This document shows, piece by piece, positions 1 through 60,424 of a stretch of DNA of 64,000 nucleotides. Made by a program: the position numbers and the translations under genes. The notes below the pieces were generated by a model, which saw only the letters and a program-made list of their open reading frames with translations, was not told where the DNA came from and made no database searches. The DNA lies in contig CM075981.1 in NCBI GenBank assembly GCA_038087875.1, positions 1,364,001 to 1,428,000 of the forward strand. Direction: 5' to 3'. Each line of letters begins with the position of its first letter. Within the stretch, counting starts at the first letter, position 1. The DNA comes from Malacoraja senta. Taxonomy: Eukaryota.

Positions 1-368
1 ATCACCGTGTCGCATGACAAAATGTGAATTAAAGGCTTCTTAAGAAGCACTTTTATACATTTAAAGAAAGCACTTTCGTTTACCTGTCCATTGTGTGAAA
101 TCCGTCCCCGTTATTGGCGTTGACGCTTCAGGAGCTGCTTTTAAAATGACTGTAGCGCTGACATTGACGATTTAATTTTTTTTTTAATTCCCAAAAAGCC
201 GGTAGGAACGATTTTGTCAGCGAAGTTTTGTACTCCAACAAAATATTTCCAGGACAGGGAAGGAGAAACCGCGTTTTAACCCCGCCCCCCCCTTAAAGGC
301 GCCAAAATCGCGCACACGGCCAGTGGCAAAATTACAGCGCGACTGAAGGTAAGTTTTGTAACATACCT
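1..368. mobile_element. Probable transposon end upstream of V1
   Basis: Homology to the V2-upstream intron starts only at about 369 (CAATATGACACATC); family unassigned. Confidence 0.3.
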
Positions 369-480
369 ACAATATGACACATCATGGGACGATTTAAGTT
401 TTCTTTATATAATTTTCAAAATGTATCTACTTTCATGAATCAGTTCAATTCCTCTCAGTTCTGAAAGTTTCCCCTTTCAG

Positions 481-801
481 TTTCAGATGCAGTGAAGGGA
501 GAGACGTATGTAAGAGGAGTTCTGGGAAGAGCGATCACAATCGATTGTAACTATGCAGCAGAGTACCGCTCACACACAAAATACTGGTGCCGTGCTCGGA
601 CTCACCAATGTTCAGATATGGTGGAAACAAATGGGCAACACGGACGGAGTGGAAGAGTGTCAATCACAGATAACCCGGCACGAGGAATATTTACTGTGAC
701 TGTGGAGGATCTTCACTCTGGAGATACAGGGTGGTACAGATGTGGAATTACTACACCTGGCGACCATCCAATGTTTCCCGTACATCTCGAAGTATCTGAT
801 G
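481..801 (+). CDS. Gene A exon: V-set Ig domain 1 (CD300/pIgR-like; MDIR-type receptor)
   Basis: Acceptor ctttcag|481 (alternative in-frame AG giving start 487), donor G|GTACGT at 802, phase 1-1. Open frame with IDC..KYWC..QC..D.G.Y.C; the extra C-C' Cys pair is typical of CD300/pIgR/TREM V domains. Confidence 0.92.
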
Positions 802-2678
802 GTACGTTTCGCAGCGATTGACTTCATGTCTCCACTGAAATGCCTGATCCATGTTTTCGCCGGGAAGGATCAGGGCAGCACCGATATCCCGAGGCTCCGC
901 AGCAGTGCAGAGACCTGCGGGGAGCGGGCTGGGGTGGGGAAACCCCCATTCGTGTTGATCTCACCCAGTGCGGGCTCTGTCCCACTGAGCGGCCACCCAC
1001 TTCAAGTGGGACGCACAGCACATTTCCGTGCCTCGGAACTGTATGAAATGTCACCCTATCAGAGGTTTGCAATCCGACTCAAACTAATAATCCGACAGAT
1101 CAGTGAGAAACAAGGGTTGCTCGCGTTCTGAATACCCAGAGATTTTCTTTTAAAGGGAATCAGTCCCCAGAGCTCAACAGACTGCGTTCAGTCCTCTCGG
1201 GGCAGACCAGCCCGCTTCCCGCTTCCTCCCCACCCCGCTCGCTCTCTTTCCCTCTGTCCCGTCAATGCGCCCCGAGGCCCAGCAGCCACTGTTCACCCAC
1301 CGCCCGGCAGCCAGCCAGTCTCTCCACCCAGACATTTGCCCGGTGATAAGCAGAATAACCTCATCTTTCGCCACATCAGCCGTCGCATACAAGATATAAT
1401 CATCCGACATTTTCGCCACCTCCTACGGGATCCCACAACTAGCCACATCTTTCCATCTCCACCGCATTCAGCTTTCTGAAGAGACCGTTCCCTCCGCGAC
1501 TCCCTGGTCAACTCGTCCTCCCCCCGAAGGACAGAGGTTCCAACATCACCACGAAGTTAATTCTACACTTCTAAAATGTGTTTACAACTGAGGTGGAAGT
1601 CAGGATTGTGGACTCATTATGTCAGTTCAAATATTCCCTGCATTTGTCCAACTCAACTCAATCGCAAACCGAACAATTCCTCGGAGTCTGAGACTGAACC
1701 ACTGTCCCCGCTCTATCCACCCAACCCCAAATTTCTCTCCATCCTCTCTCCAATCCGCGGCCCAGTCGTGCTGAATTGTCCAGGGCGAACCGGGGTCATT
1801 GGGAATAGAACCTGTCCCCGATGAGCAGCGGGACATTTGGCTCCCAAATCAGTTTAGTTTATTGTCACGTGTACCATGGTACAGCGAAAAGCTTTTTTGT
1901 TGCGTGCTAACCAGACAGCAGAAAGACAATCCATGATTACAATCGATCCTCTTACAGTGCGCAGATACATGAAAAGGAAATAACGTTTAGTGCAAGGTAA
2001 AGCCAGCAAAGTCCGATGAAGGGAATTCCGAGGGTCATCAAAGATGTAGATAGGGGTTCAGAACTACTCACTGTTTGTGGTATGATGATTCAGATGGCTG
2101 ATAACAGCTGGGAAGAAACTGTCCTAGAATCTGACAGTGTGCGTTTTCAACCTAGTAACGCTCTCCGGTAACGAAGCCGCTTTATTGTAAACCGCCGCCC
2201 TCTGTCCTCATTCAGGGCTATGTAAAGGCAGTGGCGGCGGTGAATGTCTAAACACGGGTCCGGCCCAGTGTCGGTTGAGAAATGAATGTTGGCAGCGCAG
2301 CCGGCGGCACCGCCATTGAAATAGCAAAGTGGGGTATTTCTGTAGGGTGAGAGGACGGGCACCGCCTGGGATTGTTGAAAGGCAGCTCCTGCAACACTGC
2401 CACGCTCCCTCAGTACCGCACTGCGATCCCAGCCGAGTTTCTGCTCAGGGATCTGGAGTGGGAAGTGAACCTAAATTGTACTGACCCGGGGACAGAACAC
2501 TGACACAACTGGTACAATAACTGCACTGCCTGCACTTCAGACCGGAGACATTGTCCGTAAAGCAATATGACACATCATGGAACGATTATGTTTTCTTTCG
2601 TGTAATCTTCCAAATGTATCTATTTCCAGTAAACAGTTCATTTGTTCTCCATCTGAAAGTTTCTCCCCTCCATTTCAG

Positions 2679-2993
2679 CTACAGTGTGGGGAGAGAGGAA
2701 TGTAACAGGAGTTGTGGGAAGAGCGATCACAATCGATTGTCACTATGCAGCAGAGTACCGCTCACAAACAAAATACTGGTGTCGTGGGAGGAGTCGCCAA
2801 TGTACAAATATAGTGGAAACAAATGGGCAGCACGGAGGGAGTGGAAGAGTGTCAATCACAGATTACTCGGCACGAGGAATGTTTACTGTGACTGTGGACG
2901 TTCTTCACTCTGGAGATACAGGATGGTACAGCTGTGGAATTACTACATCTGGCGACCATCCAATGTGTAACGTACATCTCCAAGTATCTGACG
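2679..2993 (+). CDS. Gene A exon: V-set Ig domain 2
   Basis: catttcag|CT ACA GTG TGG acceptor, G|GTAGGT donor at 2994, phase 1-1, open frame (ORF 2684..3013), four conserved Cys, paralogous to V1. Confidence 0.92.
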
Positions 2994-3634
2994 GTAGGTT
3001 TCGCAGCAATTGACTTGACGTCTCCACTGAAATGCCTGATCCATGTTTTCTCCGGGAAGAGTCAGGGCAGCACCGATATCCAGAGGCTCCGCAGCAGTGC
3101 AGAGACCTGCGGGGAGGGGCGGGGGTCGGGAAACCCCACTCATTTTGCTCTCACCCAGTGCGGGCTCTGTCCCGCTGAGCGGCCACACCTCAAGGATCAT
3201 CACTCCCTCCCCACCCCGCTCTCTCTCTCTCTCCCTCTGCCCCGTCAATGCGCCCCCACCCCCAGCAGCCACTGTCCACCCACCGCTGGCAGCCAGCCAG
3301 CCTGTCCACCCGGACATTTCCCCGGTGGTAAGCATAATAAACTCATCTTTCGCCCCATCAGCCGTCGCACACAACATATAATCCTCCAACATTTTCGCCA
3401 TCTCTAGCGGAATCCCACAACTAACCGCATCTTTCCATCTCCACCGCTTTCTGCTTTCCGAAGAGACTGTTCCCTCCGCAACTCCCTGGATTACTCGTCC
3501 TCGCAGAGATGCAGATGAGCCGGTGAGATATCAACCGGACGATTCGGGCTGAGATAAAGGGCTGCTGAGATTTAGCAACTGTTTATTTGTTAACTGTTCA
3601 TACAGGTGACGGAATGTTTGCTCCATTCCCACAG

Positions 3635-3955
3635 AACCTGTGTCTGTTCCTGTGCTCAGATATCTGTCAGCAGCAAATGCCTCACGTCTCGGCGGCTCAG
3701 TGTCAGTGTCCTGTGAGGCTGTCGGTGGATCTCTTCCCATCCATTACACATGGTTTGAGAAGAACGAGCATTGGGTTTCAACGATCTTGAAAAGCAATCA
3801 ACTGGATCTGAGTTGTGAAATCCTCGGAGGTCAAAACCGTCAATTTTACTGCACAGCCTCAAATAACCGTGGGACAAAATCCGGTGAAATGCTCAACGTG
3901 AAATTCTTCAAAGGAGCAGGAACGTGTAGTTATGTGACAGAAATCAATAATACAG
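3635..3955 (+). CDS. Gene A exon: C2-type (FcR-like) Ig domain a
   Basis: cccacag|AA CCT GTG acceptor, G|GTGAGT donor at 3956, phase 1-1. EPVSVPVL..SVSCE..GSLPIHYTWF..FYCTASNNRG resembles FCRL-type C2 domains. Confidence 0.9.
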
Positions 3956-5212
3956 GTGAGTGTTATTTTCCCGTGGGAATACTGTTTCACAATTCCTCTT
4001 GTGTTCTTGGAGCTGCTGCTTTTCACCTTGTGGTTATGTTCGTGGGTTCTTGGTATTTGCAAACGGCATCATTGCAGCCACCGTGAGCTCATGGTGTAAA
4101 ATGCGAGAGTTTGCTTGGGGGACTGGCAAATAATTGCCTGATGCTTTCACCTGGGAGCTGATGAGCAATTTCAGCAAAGGAGAGAAATAAATGCACTTAT
4201 CACAACAGGTTAAGTGCAATACATCAAATTGCTGCCTTCTGCCTTAAAAACGATTTTCTGGCTGCCGCTTAAGATCTCAAAGTCAATTTGAGAAAGAGAA
4301 AGAAATGCATTCTGTTTGGATCCATCATCATTTAAAACCAAGGATGGACAATTTCATGATCATGTTCATGATTTTATCTCTTTTAAATAAGTGTGAATCA
4401 CTGGAACTTAAGTAATCTCACAAAATTAACGTGGAATCTACTTGGACGACACTCCATCAATATAACCCTTACTTTTGTCAGATAATTTTGTATCCCAGTA
4501 GGTGTGGGAACGCTCAGATTGGAAGTCCATAAGTGTGAATGGTTTACATCAGCGAGACCAAGCGCAGCCTAGGCCAGTGCTTCTGAAACTATTTCAGCGT
4601 CGTTCACCCTTGAGTCTTTATCACAAAATTTCATTCACCCTCGACTAAATGTTCTTATGTTTTTTAGGTAATTTTCATCTTATTCTCCCTTGTGTATAAT
4701 TGTATATACAATTTATATTGTCACATGAGCAAAAAATACAATTCACTCCAAAGTAATTTCATTCACACTTGGGTGAACCATTCATCAGTTAAGAAGCATT
4801 GGTCTAGGCCACAATTTCACTGAACACTTGTGCTTGGTCTGTCATGACCCAGAATCGCGCTTGATAGACACCCCATCATCAACCTCCCACGCTGATACAG
4901 AGCAGCAGCAATTTGCACCATCTGCAAGATGCACTGCAGCAACTCACCAAGACTCCACCGACAGCGCCTTCCAATTCCAACAGGCTCCGTGTTCAATGTA
5001 TCATTCTTCACCATTCACACCCATATTGGCTGGGAACGCCTGTGCAGATGGTGAGGGACGGTGTACAGTATCTGTCTCTCATCGCAATCAAGGTGGAATT
5101 CAACAGTTAACAAAATGGGCGGTCTCCCCTGTGCACACTGATGTATACGATAATGTATATGTTTGTAAAAGGCTAATTTTGTTCTTCAATTCATGAAATA
5201 TGTTTCCTTCAG

Positions 5213-5530
5213 TTTCAGGTGCTCTGTGGGCAGAGAGCGAAGTAGGCGGGGTTGTGGGAAGAGCGATCTCAATCGGTTGTCACTATTCAGCAGTGTATCG
5301 CTCACACATAAAATACTGGTGCCCTGGGACAAGTCGCCAGTGTACACATGTAGTGGAAACAAATGGGAAATATGGACAAAGCGGAAGAGTGTCAATCACA
5401 GATAACCCGGCACGAAGAATATTTACTGTGACTGTGGAGGATCTTCAATCTGGAGATACAGGATGGTACAGTTGTGGAATTACTACACCTGGCGAACCAA
5501 CATTTAAAGTACATCTCCAAGTATCTGAAG
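5213..5530 (+). CDS. Gene A exon: V-set Ig domain 3
   Basis: ccttcag|TT TCA GGT GCT acceptor (alternative start 5219), G|GTAGGT donor at 5531, phase 1-1, open (ORF 5200..5550). Confidence 0.92.
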
Positions 5531-5837
5531 GTAGGTTTCTCAGTGAGTGACTTTATGTCTCCACTTTGGCATCCGCACAAAATATTTGGTAGGTGGGAGT
5601 CTGGTGCACAGTTCTGGTCGCCGCGTTATAAAACAAAAGATGTGAAAGGTTTGGAGAGGTTGCAGAAAATGTTCACCGCGAAATTTAGTTGTCGTTTACA
5701 AATGCAACATGGAAATGGATCCTGCGGCCCACCGAGTCCACACCAACTAGCGATCTCCGGTCACACTAGTCCTGTTATTCCACTTTCCCATGCGCTCCCT
5801 ACACACAATTCTGCAATACCGCCATTCAGACACGTCA

Positions 5838-6061
5838 TTAATGAGGAGAAGGAGCTTTCTGCCGGGCAATTTGGCTGTCGCTTTGAAATGTAACGTCTGA
5901 GTAGCTGACATTGTCCTCATCTGTACTGGAGTGTGTCCCTGTCATAATTGCATTCCTGCATACACAGTTTGATTTTGAATAGACAAACGGGCAGCTTCCT
6001 TGTTGCTTTGAATGTCTGACAATGTTGCACAAACGATGCTCCCTTTTCCTGCTGGCAATTC
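5838..6061 (-). pseudogene. Inverted, decayed copy of the B-type ITIM tail exon inside a gene A intron
   Basis: Reverse complement reads ELPAGKGSIVCATLSDIQ..TVYAGMQL* then, in another frame, THSSTDEDNVSYSDV..APSPH*. Homologous to 47078-47354; acceptor AG mutated to GG. Confidence 0.85.
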
Positions 6062-6124
6062 CCGAAATGTAAAGGAGAATCCAAGATTTGTCTGATGATT
6101 TGTCTGATTTGTGGTCAGTTTTAA

Positions 6125-6660
6125 TCACCATGTTATAGGAAAGATGCTATCGTTGGATAGGGCGCAGAGAAGACTTACAAGGATGTTGCGATGAGTTGAG
6201 GGCCAGACCTACAGGGAGGGGTTGAGCTGACTAGGACTTTATTTCTTGGAGCGCAGGAGGATGAGGTGTGATCTTATGGCAGGTACAAAATCTTGCGAGG
6301 AATAGATCGTGTAAATCCACAGGAATAGATCGTGTAAATGCACAGGAATAGATCGTGTAAATGCACATACTCTGAGTTTTTGCCCAAAGTACGGGGATCG
6401 AGAACCAGAGAACATTGTTTTAAGATAAGCGGGAATGATTTAACAAGAACCTGGGGGTAACGTTTTTACACAAAGGTTGGTAGGTATATGAAACAAACTG
6501 CCGACGGAAGTAGTAATGGCAGGTTTTCGCAATATTTAAGTAAAATGTGGACAGGTTCATGAATAGGATAAGTTTAGAGGGTTAAGGGCCAAACAAGTGC
6601 AGGTGGAACTAGTGTAGATTGGGCGTGTTGGTCAGTGCGTGCAAGTTAGACCGAAGGGCC
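6125..6660 (+). mobile_element. CR1-type LINE 3' fragment, carried in with the inverted tail exon
   Basis: RKDA..LDRAQRRLTRML-like sequence; reverse complement matches about 41390-41680 and 46741-47045. Confidence 0.75.
6298..6367. repeat. 23-bp tandem triplication AGGAATAGATCGTGTAAATGCAC
   Basis: Three adjacent copies with one mismatch, inside the CR1 fragment. Confidence 0.9.
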
Positions 6661-6815
6661 TGTTTCTACGCTACATGACTCTATGACTCTATGTAGATGG
6701 ATGGGTCAGTTTCCAACATGGCGGCTCTGGCTAAGGTACAGAGATGGTGGATATTTGCGAGTGTTGGATTTACAGATGTTCACTCAGTGTCTGACTGTTT
6801 GCTCCTTTCCCACAG

Positions 6816-7136
6816 AACCCGTGTCTGTTCCTGTACTTGGATTTCTGTCACCAGCCAATGAACCCTGTCTCAGAGGCTCAGTGACAGTGTCCTGTGAGTC
6901 GGTCCGGGGATCCCTTCCCATTAACTACAGCTGGTATGAAAAGACCCCATCTGTGGATTCAAAGATCTCAGACAGCAATGCCCTGGATCTACATTGTCAA
7001 TCCTTCCAACACCAGCACCATCAATATTATTGCACGACTTCAAATCAACTTGGGTTACAATCCAGTGAAATGGTCAACGTGTCCATCTCCAGCAGTGACG
7101 TGCCCTGCAGTATTCTAGCGAAAATCAACGGCACTG
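6816..7136 (+). CDS. Gene A exon: C2-type (FcR-like) Ig domain b
   Basis: cccacag|AA CCC GTG acceptor, G|GTAAGT donor at 7137, phase 1-1, same length (321 nt) as and homologous to C2a. Confidence 0.9.
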
Positions 7137-8199
7137 GTAAGTAGTGGAGGGAATGCGGAGAAGAAAGGGAAGTGGTTCATATGATCATGTGATAGAAGCA
7201 GAAATAGACCATTCAATCATGGCTGATCTATCTTCCCCTCTACACCACATTATCCTGCCTTGTCCCCATAGCCCCCGACGCCCTGATATCCATGCACCTT
7301 ATTTAATTAATTTATCAAGATTAAAATGATGGAATTAAGGTCCATTTGTCAATACTTGGTTGTTGGGTTATAGAAATAGATTTCCCAGTGCTGGTGTAGG
7401 CCTGCTTCCCGGCTAGAACATCCTCTTATGTTTACACAGCTTTCAACTGGGTTTGCAGTGACATCAGTCCAAGCACTTTCATTTTCCAGCATCTCCAAAT
7501 GACCGACGCTCAAATATGGGAAGGGAAAAGAAATTATCAGTAAATGTGGCCACAGTTAACTCCTAGAGGACTGTATCAGCTTTGGTCCACTGTGTTAATG
7601 TTGACCATTCAGTACCATCGATACTAATCCCATTTTACCAGCCCCTCATCCACGGTCTTCTCAGACTTGACAATTCAAGTGTCTCCACTATCTAAGTTTA
7701 AAAATACTTCTTGCTGAGATACCCTCCAAATATTCTACACCTTAACCCAACCCTATGTTCTCCACTTCTTCGCACATCTGCTGTGCTGATTTCCCACGAA
7801 GTCCCCTATCACCTTTATCTTACTTTCTTTATCTTTATTACTTTATTGTCATAGTAGTGGTGTATACAACGAAATTCAGGCGCACAGATGAAATGTACAA
7901 GATAAAAAATAACAATAAAATAACATCAAAAAAAGTGAAAATAATAAAAATACACATACACACAGATTCACATACGCATACACATTATGCCTACGTATGA
8001 ACCCTTACCAGAATATCCACTGTGCATCGAACCGATGGTTGGTCGTTCATGGGTACACAAAAATGCTGGAGAAACTCAGCGGGTGCAGCAGCTTCTTTGG
8101 AGCGAAGGAGATAGGCAACGTTTCGGGCCGAAACCCTTCTTCAGACTGATCTCAGTTTTGTAGTTTGATAGTTCATGTTGGTTATTTAAAGATTTTGGT

Positions 8200-8475
8200 C
8201 GGAGATACAGTGCGGTAACAGGGTCCACGGCGACCAGCGATCCTCGCACATTAACACTATCCTGCACCCACTAGCGCATTTTTAAAAAACATTTACCAAG
8301 CCAATTAACCTATAAACATGTCGTCTTTGGAGTGTGGGAGGAATCCGAAGAACTCGGAGAAAACCCACGCAGGTCACGGGGAGAACGTACAAACTATGTA
8401 CAGACAGCACCCGTGGTCGGAATCGAACCCGGGTCTCCGGTGCTGTAACGCAGCAACTCTACCGCTGCGCCATCG
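8200..8475 (-). mobile_element. tRNA-derived SINE (HE1/V-SINE-like)
   Basis: Minus-strand A box TGGCGCAGCGG, B box GGTTCGATTCC, core GGTTTCCTCCCAC equivalent. Confidence 0.8.
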
Positions 8476-9192
8476 TGTGATATGTTCCCGTATGCATACG
8501 TGGCACTCAATAATAAATAAACTAAAAGAATACTAATTAAGGAACACCGGCTCGAGAAGTGTTGAACCGCTGCACGTACGTGCCCCGCCATCTTGTTCCT
8601 CATAGCTTTGCACCCCTGTAATAGGTCCCTCCTTCCCCTCCTGTATGGAATAAAACCCCCATCAATCCAGCCTCTCCTCCGAACTGTAATGTTTCATCCC
8701 AGGCACTATCCCTCTCGTAACATCACCTCCTTTAGTTTAGTGATCCAGCGTGGAAGCAGCTGCCTTTCACCGGTGCCCTAATTCTATCCTACTCACCAGG
8801 GACAATTTACAGAAGGCAATTAACCTACAAACCTGCACGTCTTTAGAATGTGGGAGAAAACCGGAGCACTTGAAGAAAACCCACTCGGTCACAGGGAGAA
8901 CATACAAACTCCGTGCAGACAGTACCCGTAGTCAAGATTGAACCCGGGTCTCTGGCGCTGTAAGGCAGCAACTCAACTGGTGGGCCACTGTGCCGCCCTA
9001 ATGTAGGCAACCTGAGTTGGAACCAGCACTACAGCTTATCACGATAACATCTCCCATTTGCTGCAAATTACACTGAAGAAACATTGCCCTGTCAATTAAA
9101 CCTATAAACTCCTTATATCGGACAAACATGCTCTCTTGTTCAACTGCAAGTGAAAAGCAGTGAAACTGATTTTTATTTCCTTGTTCCAACAG

Positions 9193-9241
9193 GACTTGAA
9201 TATTCTTGTGAAACTTCGAAAAGAACCAATTATTCTTCAAG
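9193..9241 (+). CDS. Gene A exon: short stalk GLEYSCETSKRTNYSSR
   Basis: Polypyrimidine tract plus ttccaacag acceptor, AG|GTAAAC donor. Its phase 1 to 2 is exactly what is needed to join C2b to the TM exon. Not in the ORF track. Confidence 0.8.
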
Positions 9242-10997
9242 GTAAACTACTCTGTTTCCAATGAATGGGGCCATGTACAAATTGCTGGTGTTTATGATTG
9301 GGATTGCTTCAATTGGGAGAAAATTGTGTCGTCCGTTCACTGGCATTAAAGGCCAGTTGGAGTATTGATCTGAATAGATAGTGACACAGCCAGTGGAACC
9401 ACAGCCTCACAATGCCAAGACCCTAAACTTAGGTGCCGTCTATGTGTGGTCTATATATTTTGCTTTCATTGTGTTGGAAGGAACTGCAGACGCTGGTTTA
9501 AACTGAATATAGGCACCACTCGGAGTAACTCGGCCGGTCAGGCAGCATCTCTGGAGAAAAGGGATAGGTAACGTTTCGGGTTGAGACCCCTCTTCAGAGT
9601 GAGGGTCAGGGGAAAGAGAAACGAGAGCGATATCGACAGTGATATAGAAAGATATAAAACAACGAATGAAAGATATGCAAAAAATAACGATGATCGCAGC
9701 CACCCGAGCTACTGAATGAGTTGCTGGCATGATCCCCAACCCTAACCTCCTCAACGCTCCTGCCCTCCCCGCAACTTTACCCCTGTCGGCCCAGCCAAGT
9801 TTGCTACTTTGTGCAGCCCAGGCGGTGCTGACCCGCGCCAGACTCCCCACACGCTGTGAAAGGAACGCCCCCCTACCCCCCCCCCCCAGCGCTTTGACAG
9901 CCGCTTCCCACTTCACACCGTTCCAGGGTCGAAGGCATGGCAGGTTCCGCGGAGAGTGGAATTGCTCGGCAAATTCCACTCCAGTGTACGGCCACTGTCC
10001 CTGCTGCCCCAGCGGAAAGCTGCTCTGTCTTCCCGCCCTTGGGACCTGCTGGTAAAATGTCGCCATCAGCAAAGTGTTTGCAAGGGCGACACTGGGCCTG
10101 GCCACCCAGCCAGAGAATGTAAATCAGCTGCCAGCAATGATGGATAGATTTGTCTATCCCTCTTTACAGCAACATCGTTCTTGATGTTGCTGTACTGAGC
10201 GATAGACAAGTCTATCTTTCTTGGCTAACAATCCAACCTTCGACCTCCAAGACGCAGGTAAATTTTCGGGCCTTATTTTAGGGTAAATAATAGCGTCTTC
10301 ATTGCCCGGAAAAACGGTATATAACTTGCAAACCAGATATTAGTTAACTCACCAAAAGGGAAATTGCACTGGTTTACATCTTGTGTTGTGTATATGCTTG
10401 GGTGATAAGAACAGGTTCCTTCATTTGTTGCCCTTCAGAGGGCGTTCCCTGCAGTATTCACCATGACCTCTCCAAAACTAATCTCATCCCATAGTGTGGG
10501 ATTAGTTGCCGAACCCAAGTATTGCTGCTTTGCCTAGTGAATTATGGGCTAAAACACTATCCTTGATATCACTTATGGCAACACCTTCCAGAGTTGGTCA
10601 AGGTCTGAATGGCAGTCACTCCAACAGCAGGAAGTGTCTCCACGTAGAACGTGACCATGAGTGATAGGCACGTTCGGTCAAGTTAACTAAACTAATCACT
10701 GCGATAAACGTGTAACAGTTCCCATGCATTGTTTGTGAAGGAGAAGGGAGGGTTCCTTAATAGTTGGACGCAATTGCTCTTCAACCAGTTTCACGATCGT
10801 TGGTCAATGTCACTTTATTGTGAGCAGATTAGCTGCTGCATTACCCACCGAAACAGACTCGACACTTCATTTCCTTTGCAGCACAATTTAAAAAAATCAT
10901 AAAAGGCGCCATATAAATGCTTGACTTTTGTTCCTTACTGAAGGCCATGAATCAATGATGAGTCGTATCTCACCCTTCCCTATTCTCTATCCGACAG

Positions 10998-11086
10998 GAT
11001 CACTTACATAGTTGCGCCTGGTGTCACTGTGCTTCTCCTGATTCTCATCATTGCCTTCCTTTGGTACCGAAAGCGTAAAATCAAGG
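10998..11086 (+). CDS. Gene A exon: transmembrane segment ITYIVAPGVTVLLLILIIAFLWY-RKRKIK
   Basis: ccgacag acceptor, G|GTGAGT donor at 11087, phase 2 to 1. Hydrophobic run followed by a basic stop-transfer, with no charged TM residue. Confidence 0.88.
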
Positions 11087-11714
11087 GTGAGTTTCTGATT
11101 TCCCTTAAATAATTTCACAATGTCTCAGTTCCTTGCAGAATGTCAAGAGATTGTATCCTGTTGTAATCAACAAATACCTGGCATTAATGTATTAAAATGT
11201 AGAAGGAAGCATAATTGATCAATAATGGTATCATGTTTGATGCTATCGTGATGACTCGGTGAGAAAAGCTGTTCTTTTAACATTATTGTACAGAAACTGT
11301 CTGAGAGTGAAATGGCAGAGATGTGTGATAACTAAGAGGCTAGGTAGAAGTAAGATTTACATAAATACTCTCATCCTCTCAGCTGTTAGAATATGCTTTG
11401 TGTGATTAGCTGTTATATTTCGAATCAGGTTAAGTCGTGTTTATTGTCACATGCACAAGCATGGTGAAGTACAGTTACAATGAAGATCACACCTGCAGCC
11501 TCACAGGGACATAGACAACGTACAACATAGCTGCCTCACACAGAGGAAGGTGGGTATATGGCAGGAGCTTCCAGAGGAGATACTTGAGGCAGGGCAGGTC
11601 TAGCCTGAACAGGTAATGCCAAATGTGAACGCCCATGAACTTGAAGCTGCAAACTATCTCCACCGACGATGAAAATGTGAAAGTTCACTGAGCTGTTTCT
11701 CAGTCGGAGAGCAT

Positions 11715-12475
11715 TACAATACAATACAATACAATACAATATATTTATTGTCATTTGAACCTCAAAAGAAGTTCAAACGAAATTTGGTTTCTGCAGTCAT
11801 ACAACAAGAAAAGCGCCAGGACACGCAACCAACACAATTTACACAAACATCCATCACAATGAAACTCCTCCTCACTGTGATGGAAGGCAAAGTCTTGTCT
11901 CTCCCCTGTGTTGTATTCTTCTCCCGATGTTAAAGCCCCCGGCGGGCGATGGCAAATCCCGCGGCCGTTAAAGGCGCGCCGGGCGATGCCGGGTCATTTT
12001 CAACCCCGCAACTCGGGCGGGAGAAGTTGTCGTTGCGGGAGCTCTGAAAAGAGGTCTCCCACCAGGGACCGCGAGCTCCCGATGTCACCGTCCACATGCC
12101 TGCAGCTGGAGCCTCCGAGCTCCGGAGTTGGGTCGCAGCCCTTGCGTAACCAGAGCCCTCCACGCTCCGAAGCCGGTCAGCCCCATGATGGCAAGTCCGC
12201 ATGCTCCGCGACTGGAGCACCCAGGTCGTTCCGGTTTGAGGCCGCTCCACGGCACTAGGCCCCAACGACAACGAAGACCCGACAGGGAAAAGGTCCGGTT
12301 ACCCGTACAGGGAAGATATTTAAAATCCCCCCCCCCCCACCCACCCCCGCCCCCCACATATACACAGCTAAAAACAATATAAAAACCACAACAAACTATA
12401 CATTCAACAGGACAAAAATCAAAAAGACAGACCAACTGCAGAGGCCGCTGCAACGTCGGTCGCGTAAAAAGTAAA
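11715..12475 (-). mobile_element. Retroelement-like insertion with AATAAA and (TTGTA)n tail
   Basis: (TACAA)n at 11716-11740 next to TTTATTG, with a GC-rich body; family not assigned. Confidence 0.45.
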
Positions 12476-12539
12476 TATTTCAGATCCAAGACCCATCATA
12501 CAACTGGGAAAGAGGGAAAAGAGGGGGGAGCCTCATTGA

Positions 12540-12880
12540 AAGATCAAATAGAGAAAGTCCTGAATAGAGTGGATGTTTCCGCTAGTGGGAGAGTCTAGGC
12601 CCAGAGGTCATAACCTTATAATTCTGTTAGGATGGAGAGGAGGAAGAATTTAATTAGTCAGAAGGTGGTGAATCTGAGGAAATCTTTGCCACATAAGGCT
12701 GTGGAGGTCGTCAATAGATATGTTTAAGACATAGATAGATAGATCCTTGATTAGTACATGTGTCATGGGTTATGGAGAGAAGGCAGGAGAAAAGGGTTAG
12801 GAGGGAGAGATGGATCAGACATGATTGAATGGCAGAGTAGATGGATGGTCCGAATAGCTTAATTCTACTCCTATCACTTA
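12540..12880 (+). mobile_element. CR1-type LINE 3' fragment
   Basis: Homologous to the 3' part of 20580-21340. Confidence 0.65.
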
Positions 12881-12919
12881 TGTACTTATGAAAACCTGTT
12901 GGAGCAGATAAAGTTGAGA

Positions 12920-13310
12920 CGATAGACACAAAATGCTGGAGTAACGGAGCGAAACAAGCAGCATCTCTGCAGAGAAGGAATGTGTGATGTTTCAAGGCGA
13001 GACCCTTTTTCAGACTGATGTCAGGGGAGTGGGAGTACAGAGATGAAATGTAATCGGAGACAGTAAGACTGGTCAAAGAACTGGGAGGGGTAGAGAGAGA
13101 GGGAAAACAAGGGCTACTTGAATTTAGAGAAGTCAATGTTCATACCGCTGGGGTGTAAGCTGCCCAAGCGAAATATGAGGTGCTGTTCCTCCAATTTTCG
13201 CTGGGCCTCACCCTGACAACAGAGGAAGCCCAGGACAGAAAGGTTAGTGTGGGAATGGGAGGGAGAGTTAAACTGTTGATCAACCGGGAGATCAGGTAGG
13301 TTTAGGCAGC
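12920..13310 (-). mobile_element. Penelope-like 3' fragment
   Basis: Reverse complement of EEQHLIFRLGSL plus the terminal repeat. Confidence 0.7.
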
Positions 13311-13949
13311 TTTAGGGTGGGATGGGTAGAGCACAGGGAATATGATCCATTCTGAACTATATGCACAGTAACCAGAACAACAGGGCAGATTCTTGCTCCG
13401 TGCGTGCAAATACACTGCAGTACTTTAGGGGTTCTCCTAAATATAAGGTCTTGGAAATAACACGTAGATGTTTGTGTGTTGGGAGGAACTGCAGATGGTG
13501 GTTTACACTGAAGATAAACATAAAAATGCTCCAGCAATTCAGCGGGTCAGAAGCGACATTTTGCCGGCAACGCAACAGAAAATCATCAAATATGGTAGTT
13601 TTCAGGTTAGCTGGATAAAAGAAACAGATTGAGTATGTGTGTATGTGTATATATACACACTGAACTTTTTTTCTCTCCCGTTATGTACTATGTTTACATA
13701 TTCTATTGTGCTGCAGCAAGTAAGATTGTCATTGTTCTATCTGGGACATATGACAATAAAACACTCTTGACTCTTGACCCTTGAAAAGGAACAGGTGACG
13801 TTTCGAGTCGAGACCCTTCTTCAGACTGAGAGTCAGAGGAAAGGGAAACAAGAGATATAGAAGGTACACAGAACAAATGAATGAAATGTATGAATTAATG
13901 ATGTTTAAACCTGTTCCTAATATGGCTCTATCGACAACATATTTTCCAG

Positions 13950-13996
13950 AATCCAAGTGCAAAACATCACACGGTGAAAACAACAATGAAACCCAG
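13950..13996 (+). CDS. Gene A exon: cytoplasmic 1 (ESKCKTSHGENNNETQ)
   Basis: attttccag acceptor, CAG|GTAAAA donor, phase 1 to 0, 47 nt; same size and phase as and homologous to 40621-40667. Confidence 0.82.
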
Positions 13997-14094
13997 GTAA
14001 AAATGTGAAATATAAGTTCTCTGAGTGATGAAGAATATAGGACTTTGAATTATCTGTATTTACACAGGCCTTTAGCAACACCAGTCCACTCCAG

Positions 14095-15870
14095 TTAAGA
14101 TGGTTGTCCTACCCAAATTCCTGTATCTTTTCCAGCATGTCCCCATACTTATCACCAAATCTTTTTTTGACAAATTAGAAAGGACAATATCTAAATTCTT
14201 ATGGCGTAGCAAACCGGTCAGAATCCGAAAGGCGATACTGCAGTCGCCTAAGAGTGATGGCGGTTTGGCCCTCCCTGATTTTAGGCGATACTACTGGGCA
14301 GCTAACTTGCAAAAAGTCCTGTATTGGATGAATGATGATTGCGAGCACCCACCGATCCGGATATATATGGAAAAGGCGAGTTCACGTCTCCCATTGCGGT
14401 CTGTCCTATGTTCCCAACTCCCCCTTTCTATAACATCTGTGGGTGCAGGCCCAATTGTGCCCCTTTCGCTCAAGGTATGGAGTGAATTTAGGAAAAACCT
14501 CGGTTTACAGGGTCCTTCCATCTTGACCCCACTGCTTAAAAATCACATTTTTAAACCTTCAAGTATAGACCACGCATTTAAAACCTGGCATAGTAATGGC
14601 ATCAGTAGTATTAACAACCTATATAAGGATGGTATCTTCTCATCTTGCGCGGAGCTCTCCTCTAACTACAACCTCCCAAACTCCCACCTTTTTCGGTTTT
14701 TCCAGATTAGGGATTTTGTGAAGAAGACATTTCCCTACTTCCCAAATCGCCCTCCTGAAACCCTGACTGATATCATCTTAGCTTTAGACCCCAATCGGAA
14801 GAAATGCATCTCTATTTTGTATAATTTCATAGGGTCGGTTTTATTGAAACCTCATACCTCATTAAAAGCTGCATGGGAGGGAGAGCTGAATACGCAATTA
14901 ACAGACCAGCAATGGGACTCTGCCTTGGATTTGATCCACTCTTCTTCCATATGCGCTCGTCATGGCCTAATCCAATGCAAGGTCCTTTACAAAGTCCACT
15001 ATACAAATGCAAGATTAGCTAGAATGTACCCAGCTGTCAATGATACCTGTAACAGATGTAGTCAATCTCCTGCCAACCATAGCCACATGTTTTGGTCTTG
15101 CCCTAAGCTAGCAGCCTTTTGGAGGAGTGCTTTTGAATTGATAAGCAGAGCTTATGACCAGACTATTCTTCCAAATCCAATGTCAGCCATTTTCGGTACC
15201 CCTCCCAATACCAACCTCTCTGTTGCGGTGAAACGGGTCCTAGCTTTTACAAACTTGTTAGCCCGGAGACTGATCTTGCTTAGTTGGAGGCTCACCTGTC
15301 CCCCGACACACGCCCGTTGGATTAAGGAGGTGCTTTACAATCTGAAAATTGAAAAACTTAGGTTCTCTCTCAAAGGCTCTACCAAGACATTCCTAGATAC
15401 ATGGAACCCTTTCTTTGAACTGGTTAACTCTCTTACCTTGTCCTCGGACTCGGAAGAGGACTGAGTGTTCTCCATCATCGTTTTGTTCTACAGCAGCTGC
15501 TTTCCCCTTAACCCCCCTCCCTNNNNNNNNNNNNNNNNNNNNNNNNNNNNNNNNNNNNNNNNNNNNNNNNNNNNNNNNNNNNNNNNNNNNNNNNNNNNNN
15601 NNNNNNNNNNNNNNNNNNNNNNNNNNNNNNNNNNNNNNNNNNNNNNNNNNNNNGTCTATTTTACCATTTGTGTATGGATGTGTACGTATGTGAGTGTTGT
15701 TTGTCCCCGTTTGGCTCCGTCCTGACTTGGGTGGGTTGAAGGTGGGTATGGGTAAGGGTTTTGAGGATCGCTTACATACTGTTGTACAATTATGCCTTGA
15801 TTATTACTGTCTTATTATTGTATGTATGTAAATTGCCGTGAAATTCAAATATAAAGATTAAATTTAAAGA
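14095..15870 (+). mobile_element. 5'-truncated L1-clade LINE (ORF2 C-terminus plus 3' UTR)
   Basis: Uninterrupted 454-aa ORF 14100..15464 beginning KMVVLPKFLYLFQ, with GGLALPD and CxxC..HMFWSC motifs; 3' UTR spans the N gap. Confidence 0.85.
15523..15653. other. N gap (131 nt)
   Basis: Run of N. Confidence 1.
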
Positions 15871-16179
15871 GATCCAGCGCAGAAGCAGGCCCTTCGGCCC
15901 ACCGAGTCCACGCCGACTGGTGACCCCGCACACTAACACTATCCTACACATACTAGGGACAATTTGCAATTATACCAAACCAATTAACCTACAAACCTGT
16001 TGTATGCGCTGTCAGGCAGCAACTCTACCGTTGCTCTACATTACTACACTATCTTTGTGTTGTAAACAGCAGCAAATGCGTGTTCTGTACACTGAACATT
16101 TGAGCTATTTTGCAATAGACATCTATTGCGGGCCTATCAGATCTATTAGGTTGTAAAATTGGATTTTGTTATATTTCAG

Positions 16180-16434
16180 GAAATGGTAGTATTAGAAGGG
16201 AACCACAGGGCAGCTGACCATTTGGATAACAATGAAGGTGGAATCACGTATGCAGTGGTGAAATGTCAAAGGAAGTTGAGATCAAGGCACCATGTGACTG
16301 ACAACGCTGTCGTCTACGCAGATGTCAATTTTCAAAGCAACTGCCCGAAGGGCAATCGGAAACCCCACTCTACTCTGCCTCCAGAGAACCTTGAGTCAAC
16401 CTATGCCTCTGTTGTTCTTAGGAGAGATGTTTAA
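16180..16434 (+). CDS. Gene A terminal exon: cytoplasmic tail with three ITIMs
   Basis: atatttcag|GAA acceptor, phase 0, stop TAA at 16432-16434. Contains ITYAVV, VVYADV and STYASV matching (S/I/V/L)xYxx(L/V). Confidence 0.88.
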   Translation, partial: EMVVLEGNHRAADHLDNNEGGITYAVVKCQRKLRSRHHVTDNAVVYADVNFQSNCPKGNRKPHSTLPPENLESTYASVVLRRDV

Positions 16435-18942
16435 TTCGGTGTGCGTTTTTGGCAATAATTGCTTTACACTGCTTTAATCTGCCCTATACTTTGTCAAAGA
16501 TGGACACAAAATGCTGGAGTAACTCAGCAGGTCAGGCAGCATTTCTGGAGAAAATGGACAGGTGACGTTTGAGGTTGGGACCCTTCTTCAGATGGTCTGT
16601 AGAAAGGTCCTGACCCAAAATGTTAACTATCCATTTTTGCCAGATATGTTTCTTGACCATCTGAGTTACTCCAGCATTTTAGGTTCGTCTTTGGTATAAA
16701 CCAGCATATTTTTATAACTATTCTTTGTCAAGCTCTTTCTGAGCGGTTTCGTTCAATTCATCAGGTGTCAGGGGGTATTGGGAGGAGGCAGGAGATTGGT
16801 GTTAGGAGGGAGAGGTACATCAGCGATGATTGAATGGTAGAGTAGCCTTGATGGACCAAATTGCCTATTCCTATCACTAATGAACATGAATTCCACTCCC
16901 TTCATCGATCTCTTTCATCTGCTAGTATATTGAGGGAGCCTAGATCGTGCATACAAATGATAAAATGGCGCTGCTTCCCATTCCTATAATTTCCACCCTC
17001 ATTCCCTCCACCCACAAGTTCCCCAACCCTCCCATCATCATTCCTTGCCAGGGTCAGCGTCGCCACCATAAAATCCATTGTCGCTGGGGCAAAATATTGT
17101 GTATTCAAGTCTGTAAAGGGGCAATGGATCAAGCAAGAAAATGGGTTCAAGTGGATAGTGGGCTATGGCAGATAAGCCCAAGATGTAAAATGATCCTCAA
17201 GCCTGGGTAAGGGGCCTCACTGAAACTTAATCAAGACTGGATTTTAACTGCCTCAGTGACCAGTTGCAAATAAAATGATCTTAAGTGAGCCCATCCATAG
17301 ATACTGCACAGCCAAGGGGAAACGAGGAGGGGGAGGGGAGTAATGTAGCGTGGAACTGCAGAACTATTCGTAGCTTTTATAGCCTATTAGAGTGCAAGAA
17401 GTGTCAAAAGTGTTTTATTGTCATACAGTATGTACTTGCAGCAGCACAACAGAGTAATAGACATGAATTCCTTTATCTTATGTACTCACTGAGAATGCAA
17501 GTTGGAGGTAGGGGAGGAACGTAATGTAGATGTGGTTGTATAAAATGCACTGAATGTTTTGTATCTGAGGGCATATGCCCCAGGACATGTGTAAACAAAG
17601 TTGGCCAATTCGTAATAAAATAAAAAATTCTGAAAACAAGCCCAGAATCCACGTGAAAATTTCCCGTCTACAACGTCCCTCCCCAGTACATGAGCACACG
17701 ACCTACGAGCACATCAGTGCCAACTGGTAGAGTACATCACTGCCTGAACTGCAAATTTCTGGGTGAGATTCTAAACCAAGGAAATTCAACTGTCATGACC
17801 ACAGAAACCCCCCACAAAAAAGGCAATTTCTGTAGCAGAAGAAAGTTCGATTGGAAATTCTGGTCTTAGCAGCATTGCTACAGGACATCTTCTCAACTCT
17901 AGAGGTACTCCGTTCGAAATATGCAAAGTTCTTACTGAGCAGGAGAGTGCAGGTGAAGGGATGAGGTTTTCCTTGGCTCAATTGTCCAAACGTAGTGTGA
18001 AGGGGTAAGTTGGGCCGAATGGCCTGTTTCTCCGTTGTATGACTCTATGACTCCAATGCAATCTAGCCTGGGAACAATTGTTTCTCAGATGTTAAAGTAT
18101 CTATGGAAATATAACTAGTACAGGATATTGACATGATGAAGAATAAGCTATGATTTTAATGCATGGTGTAGTTATGAAGGACCGAATGGGGCCTGACATA
18201 TTTGTTCATTAATTTGTTCACCCTACAATACACATGTATTTGTTTTTGAACACATTTCCAGTCAATATACAAACACATCAAAGGCCAACGTGCCATGGAA
18301 TGAAACATTGAGTGTGAGCTGCATCTTGCTGTGGTCAACGTGCTTCCTGTTAATATGAGCAGTTGAGCAAAACACAAAAAAAACACTTCAGTGGATCAAC
18401 CAACATCTCTGAAAGGAAATGGGCAGATGACATTTCAAGTCAAACCCTACTTCAGACTGGTGTTACTTTTCTCAGAATATGACTGCAGCAGAAACCCACA
18501 AACAAACAATGTTCATAAGTTCATAAGTACTAGGTGCAGAATTAGGCCTTTTGGCCCAACAAGTCTACTCCGCCATTCAATCATGGCTGATCTATCTTCC
18601 CCTCTCAACCCCAATCACCTGCCATCTCCTACATAACCCCTGACACCCACGCTAATCAGGAATCTGTCAATCTCTGCCTCAGAAATATCCATTGACTTGG
18701 CTTTTACAACCGTCAGTTGAAATACATTCCACAGATTCACCACCCTCTGACTGAAGAAATTTGGCCCATATCGCTCTGAACCTATCCTGCCAAGGTTCCC
18801 TCAAGTTCCTATCAAATCTGTCCCCCCTCATCTTAAACCTATGTACCCTGGTTCTCAAGTATTCAGCAAGAACATGCAGACTATAAGAATGTTAGCTCAG
18901 GGAGAGCACCTTGCCCTGGCAGGTCAGTGGGTTTCAGGTAGA

Positions 18943-21830: not shown

Positions 21831-21857
21831 GCTAACATGGTCTCCTTGGATAAAACT

Positions 21858-21894
21858 ATGTGGATTCCAATTCTTCTCAATTATTCCCTGCCCG
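21858..21894 (+). pseudogene. Orphan leader exon MWIPILLNYSLP
   Basis: ATG..CCC G|GTAAGT, 37 nt, phase 1, homologous to the leaders at 33100 and 52868 including upstream sequence. Hydrophobic core degraded; no Ig exon found before the next leader. Confidence 0.75.
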
Positions 21895-26526: not shown

Positions 26527-26716
26527 NNNNNNNNNNNNNNNNNNNNNNNNNNNNNNNNNNNNNNNNNNNNNNNNNNNNNNNNNNNNNNNNNNNNNNNNNN
26601 NNNNNNNNNNNNNNNNNNNNNNNNNNNNNNNNNNNNNNNNNNNNNNNNNNNNNNNNNNNNNNNNNNNNNNNNNNNNNNNNNNNNNNNNNNNNNNNNNNNN
26701 NNNNNNNNNNNNNNNN
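26527..26716. other. N gap (190 nt)
   Basis: Run of N. Confidence 1.
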
Positions 26717-38365: not shown

Positions 38366-39753
38366 GCTGGCTGGAAACTTGAGTACAACACAAAATGCTG
38401 GAGTAAGTCTATGGTGTTGGAGGGTGGCATGGTGGTGAAGCGGTAGAGTTGCTGCCTTACAATGCCTGAGAGGCATAATCAAGGACCAGTCCCCCCGGTT
38501 TCTCCCTCTTCTCCACTCTCCCACCAGGCAAGAAGTATGGAGGTTTGAAAACGCACACCTGCAAAGTTAGGGGCATTTTCTTCCCAGCAGTTATCAGGCA
38601 ACTGAACCATCCCCTCACCAGCTAGAGAACGATCCAGACCTCCCATCTACCTCATTGGAGACATTACAACTATCTTTAATCAGACTTTATTGGACTCGAT
38701 CTTGCACTAAACATTATACCCTTTATCCCGAATCTGTATGCTGTGACAGCTTGATTGTAATCGTGTATAGTCTTTTCGCTGATCGGATAGCACACAACAA
38801 AAAGCTTTTCACTGCACCTCGATAAACGTGACAATCATAAACTAAACTAAATTAAAGAAACAACAGTCAATGTTCAAACCAGTGTTAAACTTGGCAGGAC
38901 ATTGACACCCACCACTAGCCACATCTTCCCATCTCCACCACTTTCTGCTTTCTGCAGAGATCGTTTCCTCCGCAACTACCTGGTTAACTCATTACTTCCC
39001 ACTCAAACCATCTCTCCCCAGGTGTAGCAGATGTAACACTTATTGACTGTCCACTGGTTTTGAACAAGGGGTGTTTCCTTCGTAAATCTGTGAGCTGTGA
39101 GTAGTTGAAAACCAATCGGCAGATACATCTACCACTAACAATGCCACTGGCCAGTTCTCACACGCAATTAGTTTAGTTTTAATTTAGTTTAGAGCTACAG
39201 CATGGAAATAAAATCCTTCGATCCACCGAGTCCATGCTGTCCATCGATCACACTTTCATATTAGATCTATGCTATCCCACTTTTTCATCCACTTGCTACA
39301 CATTAAGGGCAATTTACCAAGGCCAATTAACCCACAAACCCACACGTCTTTGTGACGTAGGAGGAATCCGGAGCACCCGGACGAAACCCACTTCATCACA
39401 GAGAGAATATGAAAACTCCTTACAGACAGCACCTGTAGTCTGGATTGAACCTGGGTCTCTAATGCTGTAAGGCAGCAACTCCATGCTGCGCAACTGTTGG
39501 GTTGAGTTGGGTTTATTCTTTATCCAGCATCACAATCATTGGTCATTATCGCACTGCTGTTTGTGGAACTTGCTGTGGGAAGTTTGGCTTTGGTGTTTAC
39601 AACATTACAGCAATGTCTGCACTCCATTCACTGGGCTTGACATATCCTGAGCTCATGAAAGATACCTTGCAGATGTTAAACTTTTGTTCTTTACCAAAGG
39701 ATAGGAATCAATGATGAAACAAGAGTAATCTTTTTGCTTTCTCTGTCCCATAG

Positions 39754-39839
39754 ACACATAATTGTGCTCAGTATTGCTGGAGTTCTTCTCGTCCTACTCT
39801 TTGTTGGTCTACTTTGGTGCCTAAAGCGTAGACAAAGGA
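39754..39839 (+). CDS. Gene B transmembrane exon (open) HIIVLSIAGVLLVLLFVGLLWC-LKRRQR
   Basis: cccatag acceptor, A|GTGAGT donor, phase 2 to 1, paralogous to 10998-11086, no charged TM residue. Confidence 0.85.
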
Positions 39840-41715: not shown

Positions 41716-42137
41716 GAATGCCAGCAGGAAACGGGAGCATCGTGTATGCAACACTGTCAGGCATGCAAAGCAACAAGGAAGCTGCCCATTGTTCTAATCA
41801 ATATCAAACTGTGTATGCAAGAGCGCAATTTCAAAGTAAATCGACAGGGTCTTCTTCTTCTTCTTTCGTGTGGCGTGCACAGCCTAAAGTTATGTACAAC
41901 TTGTTCTATTTGATATTCCGTTTGTGCACGTCGAGTTGATTGCATTAGTCGAAACAGGGCGGACCACGTGAAGGTTGCAATCTTCCACCCCGACATGGTC
42001 TCACTCCAGTACTGAGGAGGACAATGTCCCCTTCTCAGAAGTTACATCTCACAGCTTCAGGCAAATTGCCCGTCAGAAAGATCGTTCTCACAATCCACAG
42101 AACTGTGCAGGGTATTTATGCCACTGTGACTTTTTAG
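41716..42137 (+). pseudogene. Gene B terminal ITIM exon, frameshifted and interrupted
   Basis: Intact acceptor, but a 1-nt deletion near the start puts IVYATL/TVYARA out of frame; 139-bp insertion at 41853-41991; a further 2-nt deletion before the last Tyr motif. Confidence 0.82.
41853..41991 (-). mobile_element. Short non-LTR retroelement tail inserted in the gene B tail exon
   Basis: (GAA)n tail on the minus strand; imperfect 10-bp TSD GACAGGGTCT (41843) / GACATGGTCT (41992). Confidence 0.7.
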
Positions 42138-47077: not shown

Positions 47078-47354
47078 GATTTGCCATCAGGAAAAGGGGG
47101 CATCGTTTATGCAACAATGTCAGACATTCAAGGCAACTAGGAAGCTGCCAATTGATCTAATCAACATCAAAATGTGTATGCAGGAGTGCAATTTCAAAGC
47201 AAATCCACAGGGACACTCCAGTACTGAGGAGGACAGTGTCACCTATTCACATGTTACATCTCAAAGCGTCAGCCAAATTGCCCGTCAGAAAGCTCCTTCT
47301 CCTCACAATCCACAGAACACTGTGCAGGGTATGTATGCCACTGTGACTTCTTAG
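47078..47354 (+). pseudogene. Duplicated B-type ITIM tail exon with stops
   Basis: atttcag|GAT TTG CCA..IVYATM, TAG at 47138-47140, a second TGA, and a 2-nt deletion before VTYSHV..MYATV*. No TM exon upstream within the duplicated unit. Confidence 0.85.
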
Positions 47355-55683: not shown

Positions 55684-55825
55684 ATTCAGGTGCACTGTAG
55701 CCAAAGCAATATGCAAGAGGATTTGTTGGAAGAGCGATCACAATCGATTGTTATTTTGGAGATGAGTAGCGCTCACACACAAAATACTGGTGTCTTTGGA
55801 GGAGTCACCAGTGTACACTTTTAGT
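55684..55825 (+). pseudogene. Gene C dead V exon fragment
   Basis: Same TAG (55698-55700) and same Penelope truncation point as 35794-35935, plus an additional stop. Confidence 0.85.
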
Positions 55826-55829
55826 TTAA

Positions 55830-59056: not shown

Positions 59057-59374
59057 TTGCAGGTGCGGTGTGGGGAAAGACATATGTAGGAGGAGCTGTA
59101 GGAAGAGCGGTCACAGTCGATTGTCACTATGAAGCAGAGTACCGCTCACGCCCAAAATACTGGTGTCACGGGTGGACTCGCCAGTGTACAGTTCTAGTGA
59201 AAACAAATGGGCAACGCGAACGGAGTGGAGTGTCAATCACAGATAACCCGGCACGAAGAATATTTACTGTGACTGTGGAGCATCTTCACTCTGGAGATAC
59301 AGGATGGTACAGCTGTGGAATTACTGCACCTGGCTTGGATCCAATGTTAAACGTTGATCTTCATGTATCTGACG
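59057..59374 (+). CDS. Intact V-set Ig exon (V4), probably gene C
   Basis: ctctcag|TT GCA GGT acceptor (alternative start 59063), G|GTAGGT donor at 59375, open, four Cys (ORF 59068..59394). Downstream exons are not in the window. Confidence 0.85.
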
Positions 59375-60330: not shown

Positions 60331-60424
60331 CTGTCCCTGCGTCCCCTGTTGTAATCTGCACCCCGGGTCCCAGCGTCGGTCCACCCCAGGCTCCCCGCGG
60401 CTGCCTCCCCCCCACAAACCCACA

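Follow-up and report, generated by a model that had tools for sequence, protein, structure and literature searches.

The gene at positions 481–16434 of a 64,000-nucleotide (nt) stretch of the Malacoraja senta genome (GenBank assembly GCA_038087875.1, contig CM075981.1, positions 1,364,001–1,428,000 of the forward strand; this whole stretch is called the window here) quite probably encodes an inhibitory type I membrane receptor of the skate modular domain immune-type receptor (MDIR) family, of the MDIR3 subtype, and is a germline, non-rearranging gene. From the outside in, the predicted receptor would consist of a leader encoded off the window, five immunoglobulin (Ig) domains (V-V-C2-V-C2), a short membrane-proximal stalk, a transmembrane helix free of charged residues and a cytoplasmic tail with three immunoreceptor tyrosine-based inhibitory motifs (ITIMs). 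The MDIR family of clearnose skate was reportedly named from cDNA clones by Cannon et al. in 2006 (Immunogenetics 58:362).

Nine-exon gene model

Splice contexts were read from the letters of the window and the exons were joined by script, all on the + strand. The original prediction had drawn nine exons with canonical splice sites, totalling 2036 nt and about 678 amino acids (aa) with no stop, and the reassembled model gave the same figures and the same phases, with the start at 481 and the end of the stop codon at 16434 both exact. The nine exons (E1–E9) are as follows.

481–801 (321 nt), + strand: E1, V-set Ig domain V1, phase 1-1; Pfam V-set E=3.5e-13; AG/GT
2679–2993 (315 nt), + strand: E2, V-set domain V2, phase 1-1; Pfam V-set E=3.7e-13; AG/GT
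3635–3955 (321 nt), + strand: E3, C2-type Ig domain C2a, phase 1-1; Pfam Ig_3, Ig_2 and Ig_C17orf99 slightly below the cut-offs; FCRL5 E=3.2e-26
5213–5530 (318 nt), + strand: E4, V-set domain V3, phase 1-1; Pfam V-set E=9.3e-12; 95% nt identity with the A. radiata exon
6816–7136 (321 nt), + strand: E5, C2-type Ig domain C2b, phase 1-1; FCRL5 E=6.3e-43; AG/GT
9193–9241 (49 nt), + strand: E6, membrane-proximal stalk GLEYSCETSKRTNYSS, phase 1-2; aligned to MDIR3 GLEYSCVTSKRSKYSS; AG/GT
10998–11086 (89 nt), + strand: E7, transmembrane helix and RKRKIK stop-transfer sequence, phase 2-1; from hydrophobicity and homolog identity
13950–13996 (47 nt), + strand: E8, cytoplasmic mini-exon ESKCKTSHGENNNETQ, phase 1-0; aligned to MDIR3 GSNCNTSHGEENNEIQ
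16180–16434 (255 nt, TAA included), + strand: E9, cytoplasmic tail with three ITIMs, phase 0; from motif scan and homolog identity

The sum of 2036 nt corresponds to 678 codons, the first of them partial, followed by TAA, with zero internal stops. All 16 splice sites at the internal exon boundaries follow the AG...GT rule, and the phases run 1-1 five times, then 1-2, 2-1, 1-0 and 0. In the list of open reading frames (ORFs), positions 465–7144 of the + strand show three V-like open segments and two C2-like ones, and a tail ORF follows at 16159–16434. With the acceptor at 481, E1 opens with VSDAV..., and its relatives open with VSGAL or VSDAL. The acceptor of E4 is a tandem of two sites 6 nt apart, allowing a start at 5213 or 5219 with the frame kept in either case. 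The start at 5219 gives a total of 2030 nt and a two-residue gap against the homologs; we preferred 5213 because this gap then vanishes and the total is 2036 nt.

The exons were compared with the MDIR3 protein of clearnose skate and with proteins and DNA of A. radiata, the latter taken from the locus of the annotated protein P0160 (A. radiata CM021389.1, 33645798–33740766, hereafter L001). E3 showed 74–85% identity with the third domain of MDIR3 and of the A. radiata proteins, and E5 showed 81–86% identity with the fifth domain of MDIR3 and P0160. The three short exons of 49, 89 and 47 nt had been proposed in the original prediction, and each was matched in both the MDIR3 protein and A. radiata DNA. 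At the protein level E6, E7 and E8 each pair with their counterparts in MDIR3 and the A. radiata proteins, with order and phase preserved; at the DNA level these mini-exons and their flanks share 92–95% identity with A. radiata exons, namely 92% for E6 with flanks (L001 79423–79531), 94% for E7, whose transmembrane segment is 76–84% identical to those of the relatives, and 92–95% for E8 with flanks against three A. radiata copies. Given this agreement in protein order and phase and in DNA identity, chance can be dismissed as the source of the mini-exons. The model of nine exons is confirmed.

Family identity and domains of the predicted receptor

A HMMER search of the whole library with V1 returned 2706 matches, the best of which were multi-Ig proteins with 60–78% identity; mapped onto the window, these matches revealed where the transmembrane and tail exons lie. 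These relatives are skate, ray and shark proteins, named 'polymeric immunoglobulin receptor-like' or 'Fc receptor-like 5' by NCBI, and they include three clearnose skate entries of UniProt, 'Modular domain immune-type receptor 2, 3 and 5'. The nearest named protein was Modular domain immune-type receptor 3 of clearnose skate (P0159, 701 aa), which is collinear with the model across all nine exons and identical to it at 514 of 671 aligned positions (76.6%). The identity with the A. radiata 'pIgR-like' protein P0160 was 80.7%, and no relative among the 250 retrieved proteins exceeded approximately 81% overall identity. In MDIR3 itself, Pfam found three stretches of V-set type and two of C2 type, ordered as in the model.

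In a maximum-likelihood tree of 30 sequences, built from V3 to the C-terminus, the model fell into a skate clade of 10 sequences together with MDIR3 and NCBI 'pIgR-like' proteins (support 100/100), and MDIR2 fell into a separate 100/100 clade. The homology search, with MDIR3 nearest among the named proteins, and the tree agree with the assignment to the MDIR family in the original prediction. The features of the MDIR3 type were found together in this gene: a two-module ectodomain, likeness over the full length, placement in the tree, an uncharged transmembrane segment combined with ITIMs, and a tandem cluster. With regard to the last of these, further MDIR exons and relics are present at 17–60 kb of the window, and the A. 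radiata relatives are also arranged in tandem. Whether this exact architecture had been described was left undecided in the original prediction. It has been described already, since MDIR3 has the same V-V-C2-V-C2 order and three ITIMs, and, judged by sequence, the gene is an additional copy, in Malacoraja senta, of the known MDIR3 type. PMC3031540 cites both the family and the GenBank accession of MDIR3, ABC86797.1.

Searches were run on single exons. The V exons matched CD300 domains in PDB at approximately 1e-19 and pIgR at 1.7e-49 when summed over domains, with further matches to NKp44, TREM2, the Fc-mu receptor (FAIM3) and TIM proteins. For a single V domain the score against CD300 (approximately 74 bits) was higher than that against pIgR D1 (47–54 bits). 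The two C2 exons, E3 and E5, had FCRL5 as the sole strong PDB match (3.2e-26 and 6.3e-43, respectively). In Pfam, the three V exons scored above the V-set cut-off, and both C2 exons came slightly short of the cut-offs of Ig_3, Ig_2 and Ig_C17orf99. The earlier description of CD300/pIgR-like V domains combined with FcR-like C2 domains is therefore correct. Every V exon retains the B–F cysteine pair and an extra C–C' pair, the latter being typical of the CD300/pIgR-type V subtype.

The helix encoded by E7 contains no D, E, K or R; from 7137 to 16180, no other 19-mer in any of the + strand frames is strongly hydrophobic. In the cytoplasmic tail of approximately 100 residues, a scan with the ITIM consensus (S/I/V/L)xYxx(I/V/L) detected ITYAVV at 16243–16260 (residue 616 of the model), VVYADV at 16309–16326 (residue 638) and STYASV at 16396–16413 (residue 667), with spacings of 22 and 29 residues between successive tyrosines. 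MDIR3 and four A. radiata proteins share all three cores, and over its whole length E9 is 65–73% identical to the MDIR3 and A. radiata tails. The uncharged transmembrane segment and the three conserved ITIMs agree with the inhibitory role that had been claimed for this gene.

Based on established ITIM biology, we infer that the receptor signals through recruitment of SHP or SHIP phosphatases. When the ectodomain meets its ligand near an activating receptor, Src-family kinases would phosphorylate the ITIM tyrosines; the phosphorylated motifs would then serve as docking sites for the tandem-SH2 phosphatases SHP-1, SHP-2 or SHIP, and the activating signal would be damped. The receptor may thus act as the inhibitory partner in a cluster where activating and inhibitory MDIR genes are paired.

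The gene leaves knowledge of the MDIR family as such unchanged. What it offers is a clean genomic exon map, mini-exons included, of an intact-looking MDIR3-type gene in a family whose members mostly carry the annotation 'pIgR-like'. Being intact within the window, it makes a sensible choice for work on expression, SHP binding and ligands, and can serve as a reference for annotation of the cluster.

Integrity of the reading frame and alternative readings

Positions 2155–17000 of the window are collinear with the A. radiata MDIR3-type locus (L001 59302–85566), with a divergence of 8.0% in exons and 10.5% in introns. The introns carry 9.2 gap openings per kb. At this intronic rate approximately 13 gap openings would be expected in E2–E8, whereas the net indel was zero and the sole gaps were a +1/−1 pair 4 nt apart. 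The other gaps within exons all fall in E9: a 2-nt gap near the exon start, where the P0160 model starts E9 further downstream, a 24-nt in-frame difference, a 1-nt deletion described below and a 1-nt gap at the stop codon. In contigs of two independent DNA runs covering 300–6299, indels were confined to introns. All framework cysteines and tryptophans are kept in the model. Within the part contained in the window, the gene appears undamaged.

Several observations weigh against a working receptor. A 1-nt deletion in E9 (16416), past the last ITIM, changes the C-terminus to VVLRRDV, where the family has VVS. At residue 204 of the model (2965–2967), V2 carries a cysteine in place of the phenylalanine found in V1 and the relatives (PMCNV versus PMFxV), and this extra cysteine is probably unpaired. 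The ratio of non-synonymous to synonymous substitution rates (dN/dS) against A. radiata was approximately 0.70 for the Ig exons E2–E5, a sign of weak amino-acid constraint, and approximately 2.1 for E6–E9 (L001 79423–85013), with 37.5 non-synonymous and approximately 5.5 synonymous changes, a count too low to distinguish positive selection from relaxed constraint. Despite the latter ratio, none of the three ITIM cores has changed. When the V exons of the window were compared with each other, dN/dS was 0.9–1.4. No leader exon was found in any of the three forward frames of window positions 1–480, where the relatives' leader sequence (...KTMWIPILL...SLP) was sought. Because it is absent from this interval, the leader exon lies outside the window, upstream, and the open frame of the model accordingly covers only that part of the gene which the window contains; in A. 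radiata P0160 the leader exon is located approximately 4 kb before V1. The last point concerns expression. Runs X1 and X2 contained 31–45% of the sampled words of 2600–7200 and a fraction of 0.17 of the tail-exon words. No exon–exon joint was detected in them over 300–6299, and their short contigs cross exon–intron borders. Since introns were covered like exons and joints were lacking, X1 and X2 behave as DNA. In X24, a polyA RNA run of another organism, only repeats matched over 300–6299.

Taken as a whole, these observations could describe a young pseudogene or a silent, decaying copy whose frame is still open after expression or selection has been lost. Such decay is frequent in immune gene families that evolve by birth and death, and elsewhere in the window there are clearly dead MDIR pieces interrupted by in-frame stops. 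The dN/dS values near or above 1, the exon divergence only slightly lower than that of introns, the C-terminal deletion, the V2 cysteine, the leader not seen in 1–480 and the lack of joints would all fit such a copy. We nevertheless regard this reading as unlikely. The 2036 nt contain neither a stop nor a net frameshift, against the gap openings expected for E2–E8 alone; the splice sites are canonical in 16 of 16 cases; no framework cysteine or tryptophan and none of the three ITIM cores has been lost; and dN/dS near 1 is also usual in the ligand-binding domains of working paired receptors. In our reading, the frame is held open by selection in a fast-evolving receptor, a recent loss of constraint being possible.

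Equally improbable, in our estimate, is a transcript that differs from the five-domain model by extra upstream Ig exons, by skipping of V1 or V2, or by use of the 5219 acceptor. All Ig exons are phase-symmetric (1-1), and therefore skipping one of them preserves the frame. Among the relatives, other domain numbers occur, V-C2-V-C2-V-C2 being one such arrangement (P0003, P0152); at the V1/V2 position A. radiata has one V only; and V1 opens with 'VS.A' like the internal V exons, so its start is no proof of an adjoining leader. In contrast, MDIR3 and four A. radiata models have exactly V-V-C2-V-C2 after the leader, and in A. radiata P0160 V1 follows directly after the leader exon, approximately 4 kb downstream.

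With respect to function, the MDIR3-type proteins, with their mix of pIgR/CD300-type V and FCRL-type C2 domains, might conceivably be cartilaginous-fish inhibitory receptors for polymeric immunoglobulin or Ig-opsonised targets, and a functional forerunner of pIgR/Fc-alpha-mu receptors and FCRLs; we hold this to be very unlikely. We know of no characterised true pIgR in this lineage. If the proposal were true, the near-neutral to positive dN/dS together with invariant ITIM cores would represent ligand- or pathogen-driven diversification.

Intron 8 contains an insertion and, within it, a gap in the assembly.

14101–15866, no strand assigned: insertion in intron 8 without a counterpart in A. radiata, non-coding for the receptor gene; from alignment to L001
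14100–15464, within the intron 8 insertion: ORF of a long interspersed nuclear element (LINE) remnant, zf-RVT; from Pfam
15523–15653, intron 8: assembly gap (N run), 1526 nt past the E8 donor and 526 nt before the E9 acceptor

Window positions 12471–14100 align to L001 up to 84387 and positions 15867–17000 align from 84384; as the two alignments meet at 84384–84387, A. radiata has the flanks of the insertion side by side. The E8/E9 junction reads ...ETQ/EMVVLEG, compared with ...EIQ/DMAVLEG in MDIR3, with zero residues missing. Because the gap is inside an insertion that A. radiata lacks and no residue is missing at the junction, it leaves the reading frame untouched. A hidden exon within the gap was considered and is ruled out on the same two grounds. 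A mis-joined scaffold, in which the ITIM exon E9 would come from another MDIR copy than E1–E8, is extremely unlikely: the gap is of unknown length and the family has many near-identical copies, but the flanks of the insertion that holds it abut in A. radiata, three A. radiata copies have E8 followed by E9 approximately 400–500 nt on, and E9 is of the MDIR3 type, as are E5–E8.

Neighbouring sequences and known receptors

The V1 cassette (370–1520) and the V2 cassette (2563–3502) share 87–88% identity, intron flanks included. This pair, seen against the single V of A. radiata, suggests a cassette duplication or conversion within the cluster. Both cassettes are 82–88% identical to a third one at 59035–61079.

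Intron 4, between V3 and C2b, harbours on its minus strand an inverted relic of another MDIR tail-exon type (5841–6619), which contains ...IVCATLSD...NVSYSDVTFQS... and a stop, and which shares 81% identity with 46823–47305. The relic is old, since homologous sequence occupies the matching place in A. radiata (L001 65118–65783). A minus-strand ITIM-like ORF at 5838–6131 was rejected as part of the gene, being this inverted relic. A short interspersed repeat near 8290–8480 and 8790–9000 has more than 20 copies in the window.

Downstream of the receptor gene, the + strand of 17124–47351 contains fragments of at least one decayed MDIR gene whose tail is of another type, and MDIR-like exons continue beyond it.

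21837–21894, + strand: intact-looking leader exon, MVSLDKTMWIPILLNYSLP followed by GT
approximately 35.7–36.0 kb, + strand: V fragment with in-frame stops, running into a repeat
39740–39838, + strand: transmembrane-like exon
41718–42103 and 47072–47351, + strand: MDIR tail pieces, the second with stops
55584–55949, + strand: second V fragment with stops, interrupted like that at 35.7 kb
59047–59379, + strand: intact V-set exon, Pfam V-set E=1.1e-9

The V exon at 59047–59379 may start another MDIR gene toward the end of the window. A second assembly gap (26527–26716, 190 N) lies outside the receptor gene. Two long ORFs, at 57105–57677 (− strand; resembling a reverse-transcriptase fragment by eye) and at 62779–63615 (+ strand, 278 aa), look transposon-derived.

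In A. radiata, the P0160 model spans 75 kb, joining a leader and V1 at 10.0–14.4 kb of L001 to V2 at 59.8 kb and skipping an N run and a partial copy (C2b to tail, 39.3–46.9 kb). P0154 and P0156 open with sequence of a C2b exon end, probably that of the preceding gene. These three look like chimeric or read-through annotations.

Among described receptors, MDIR3 of Rostroraja (Raja) eglanteria shares the V-V-C2-V-C2 order, the stalk, the uncharged transmembrane segment and the ITIMs ITYAVV, VVYADV and S(I/T)YASV. In comparison with MDIR3, the copy in the window is without 11 residues of the tail exon, has a V2 start two residues shorter and an extra V2 cysteine, and ends in VVLRRDV rather than VVS; it represents another species or a paralog, with no near-identical match. 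The best overall identity, 79–81%, was to the A. radiata pIgR-like proteins P0160, P0154, P0156 and P0167, which are in tandem on CM021389.1. Their locus is collinear with the window from V2 to the tail exon, with mini-exons of equal size, but it has one V in place of the V1/V2 cassette pair, lacks the LINE insertion in intron 8 and has approximately 11 kb extra past C2b.

The V domains are of the same subtype as those of CD300A and CD300LF (E approximately 1e-19), including the extra C–C' disulfide. CD300A and CD300LF have an uncharged transmembrane segment and a tail with several ITIMs, and belong to paired activating and inhibitory clusters. However, CD300 proteins have a single V and no C2 domain, whereas the model has five Ig exons, including two of the FCRL-type C2, and the lipid ligands of CD300 need not apply to it. 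pIgR has repeated V domains of the same subtype and was the top PDB match when domain scores were summed. It consists of V-type domains only, lacks both FCRL-type C2 domains and ITIMs, and has transcytosis signals in its tail; the model differs from it in having both C2-type domains and ITIMs. FCRL5 was strongly matched by the C2 exons (3e-26 and 6e-43), and the FCRLs are ITIM-bearing multi-Ig receptors, but they are without CD300/pIgR-type V domains. At the level of sequence, the resemblance of the model to CD300, pIgR and FCRL is domain by domain only, and the defining architectures differ.

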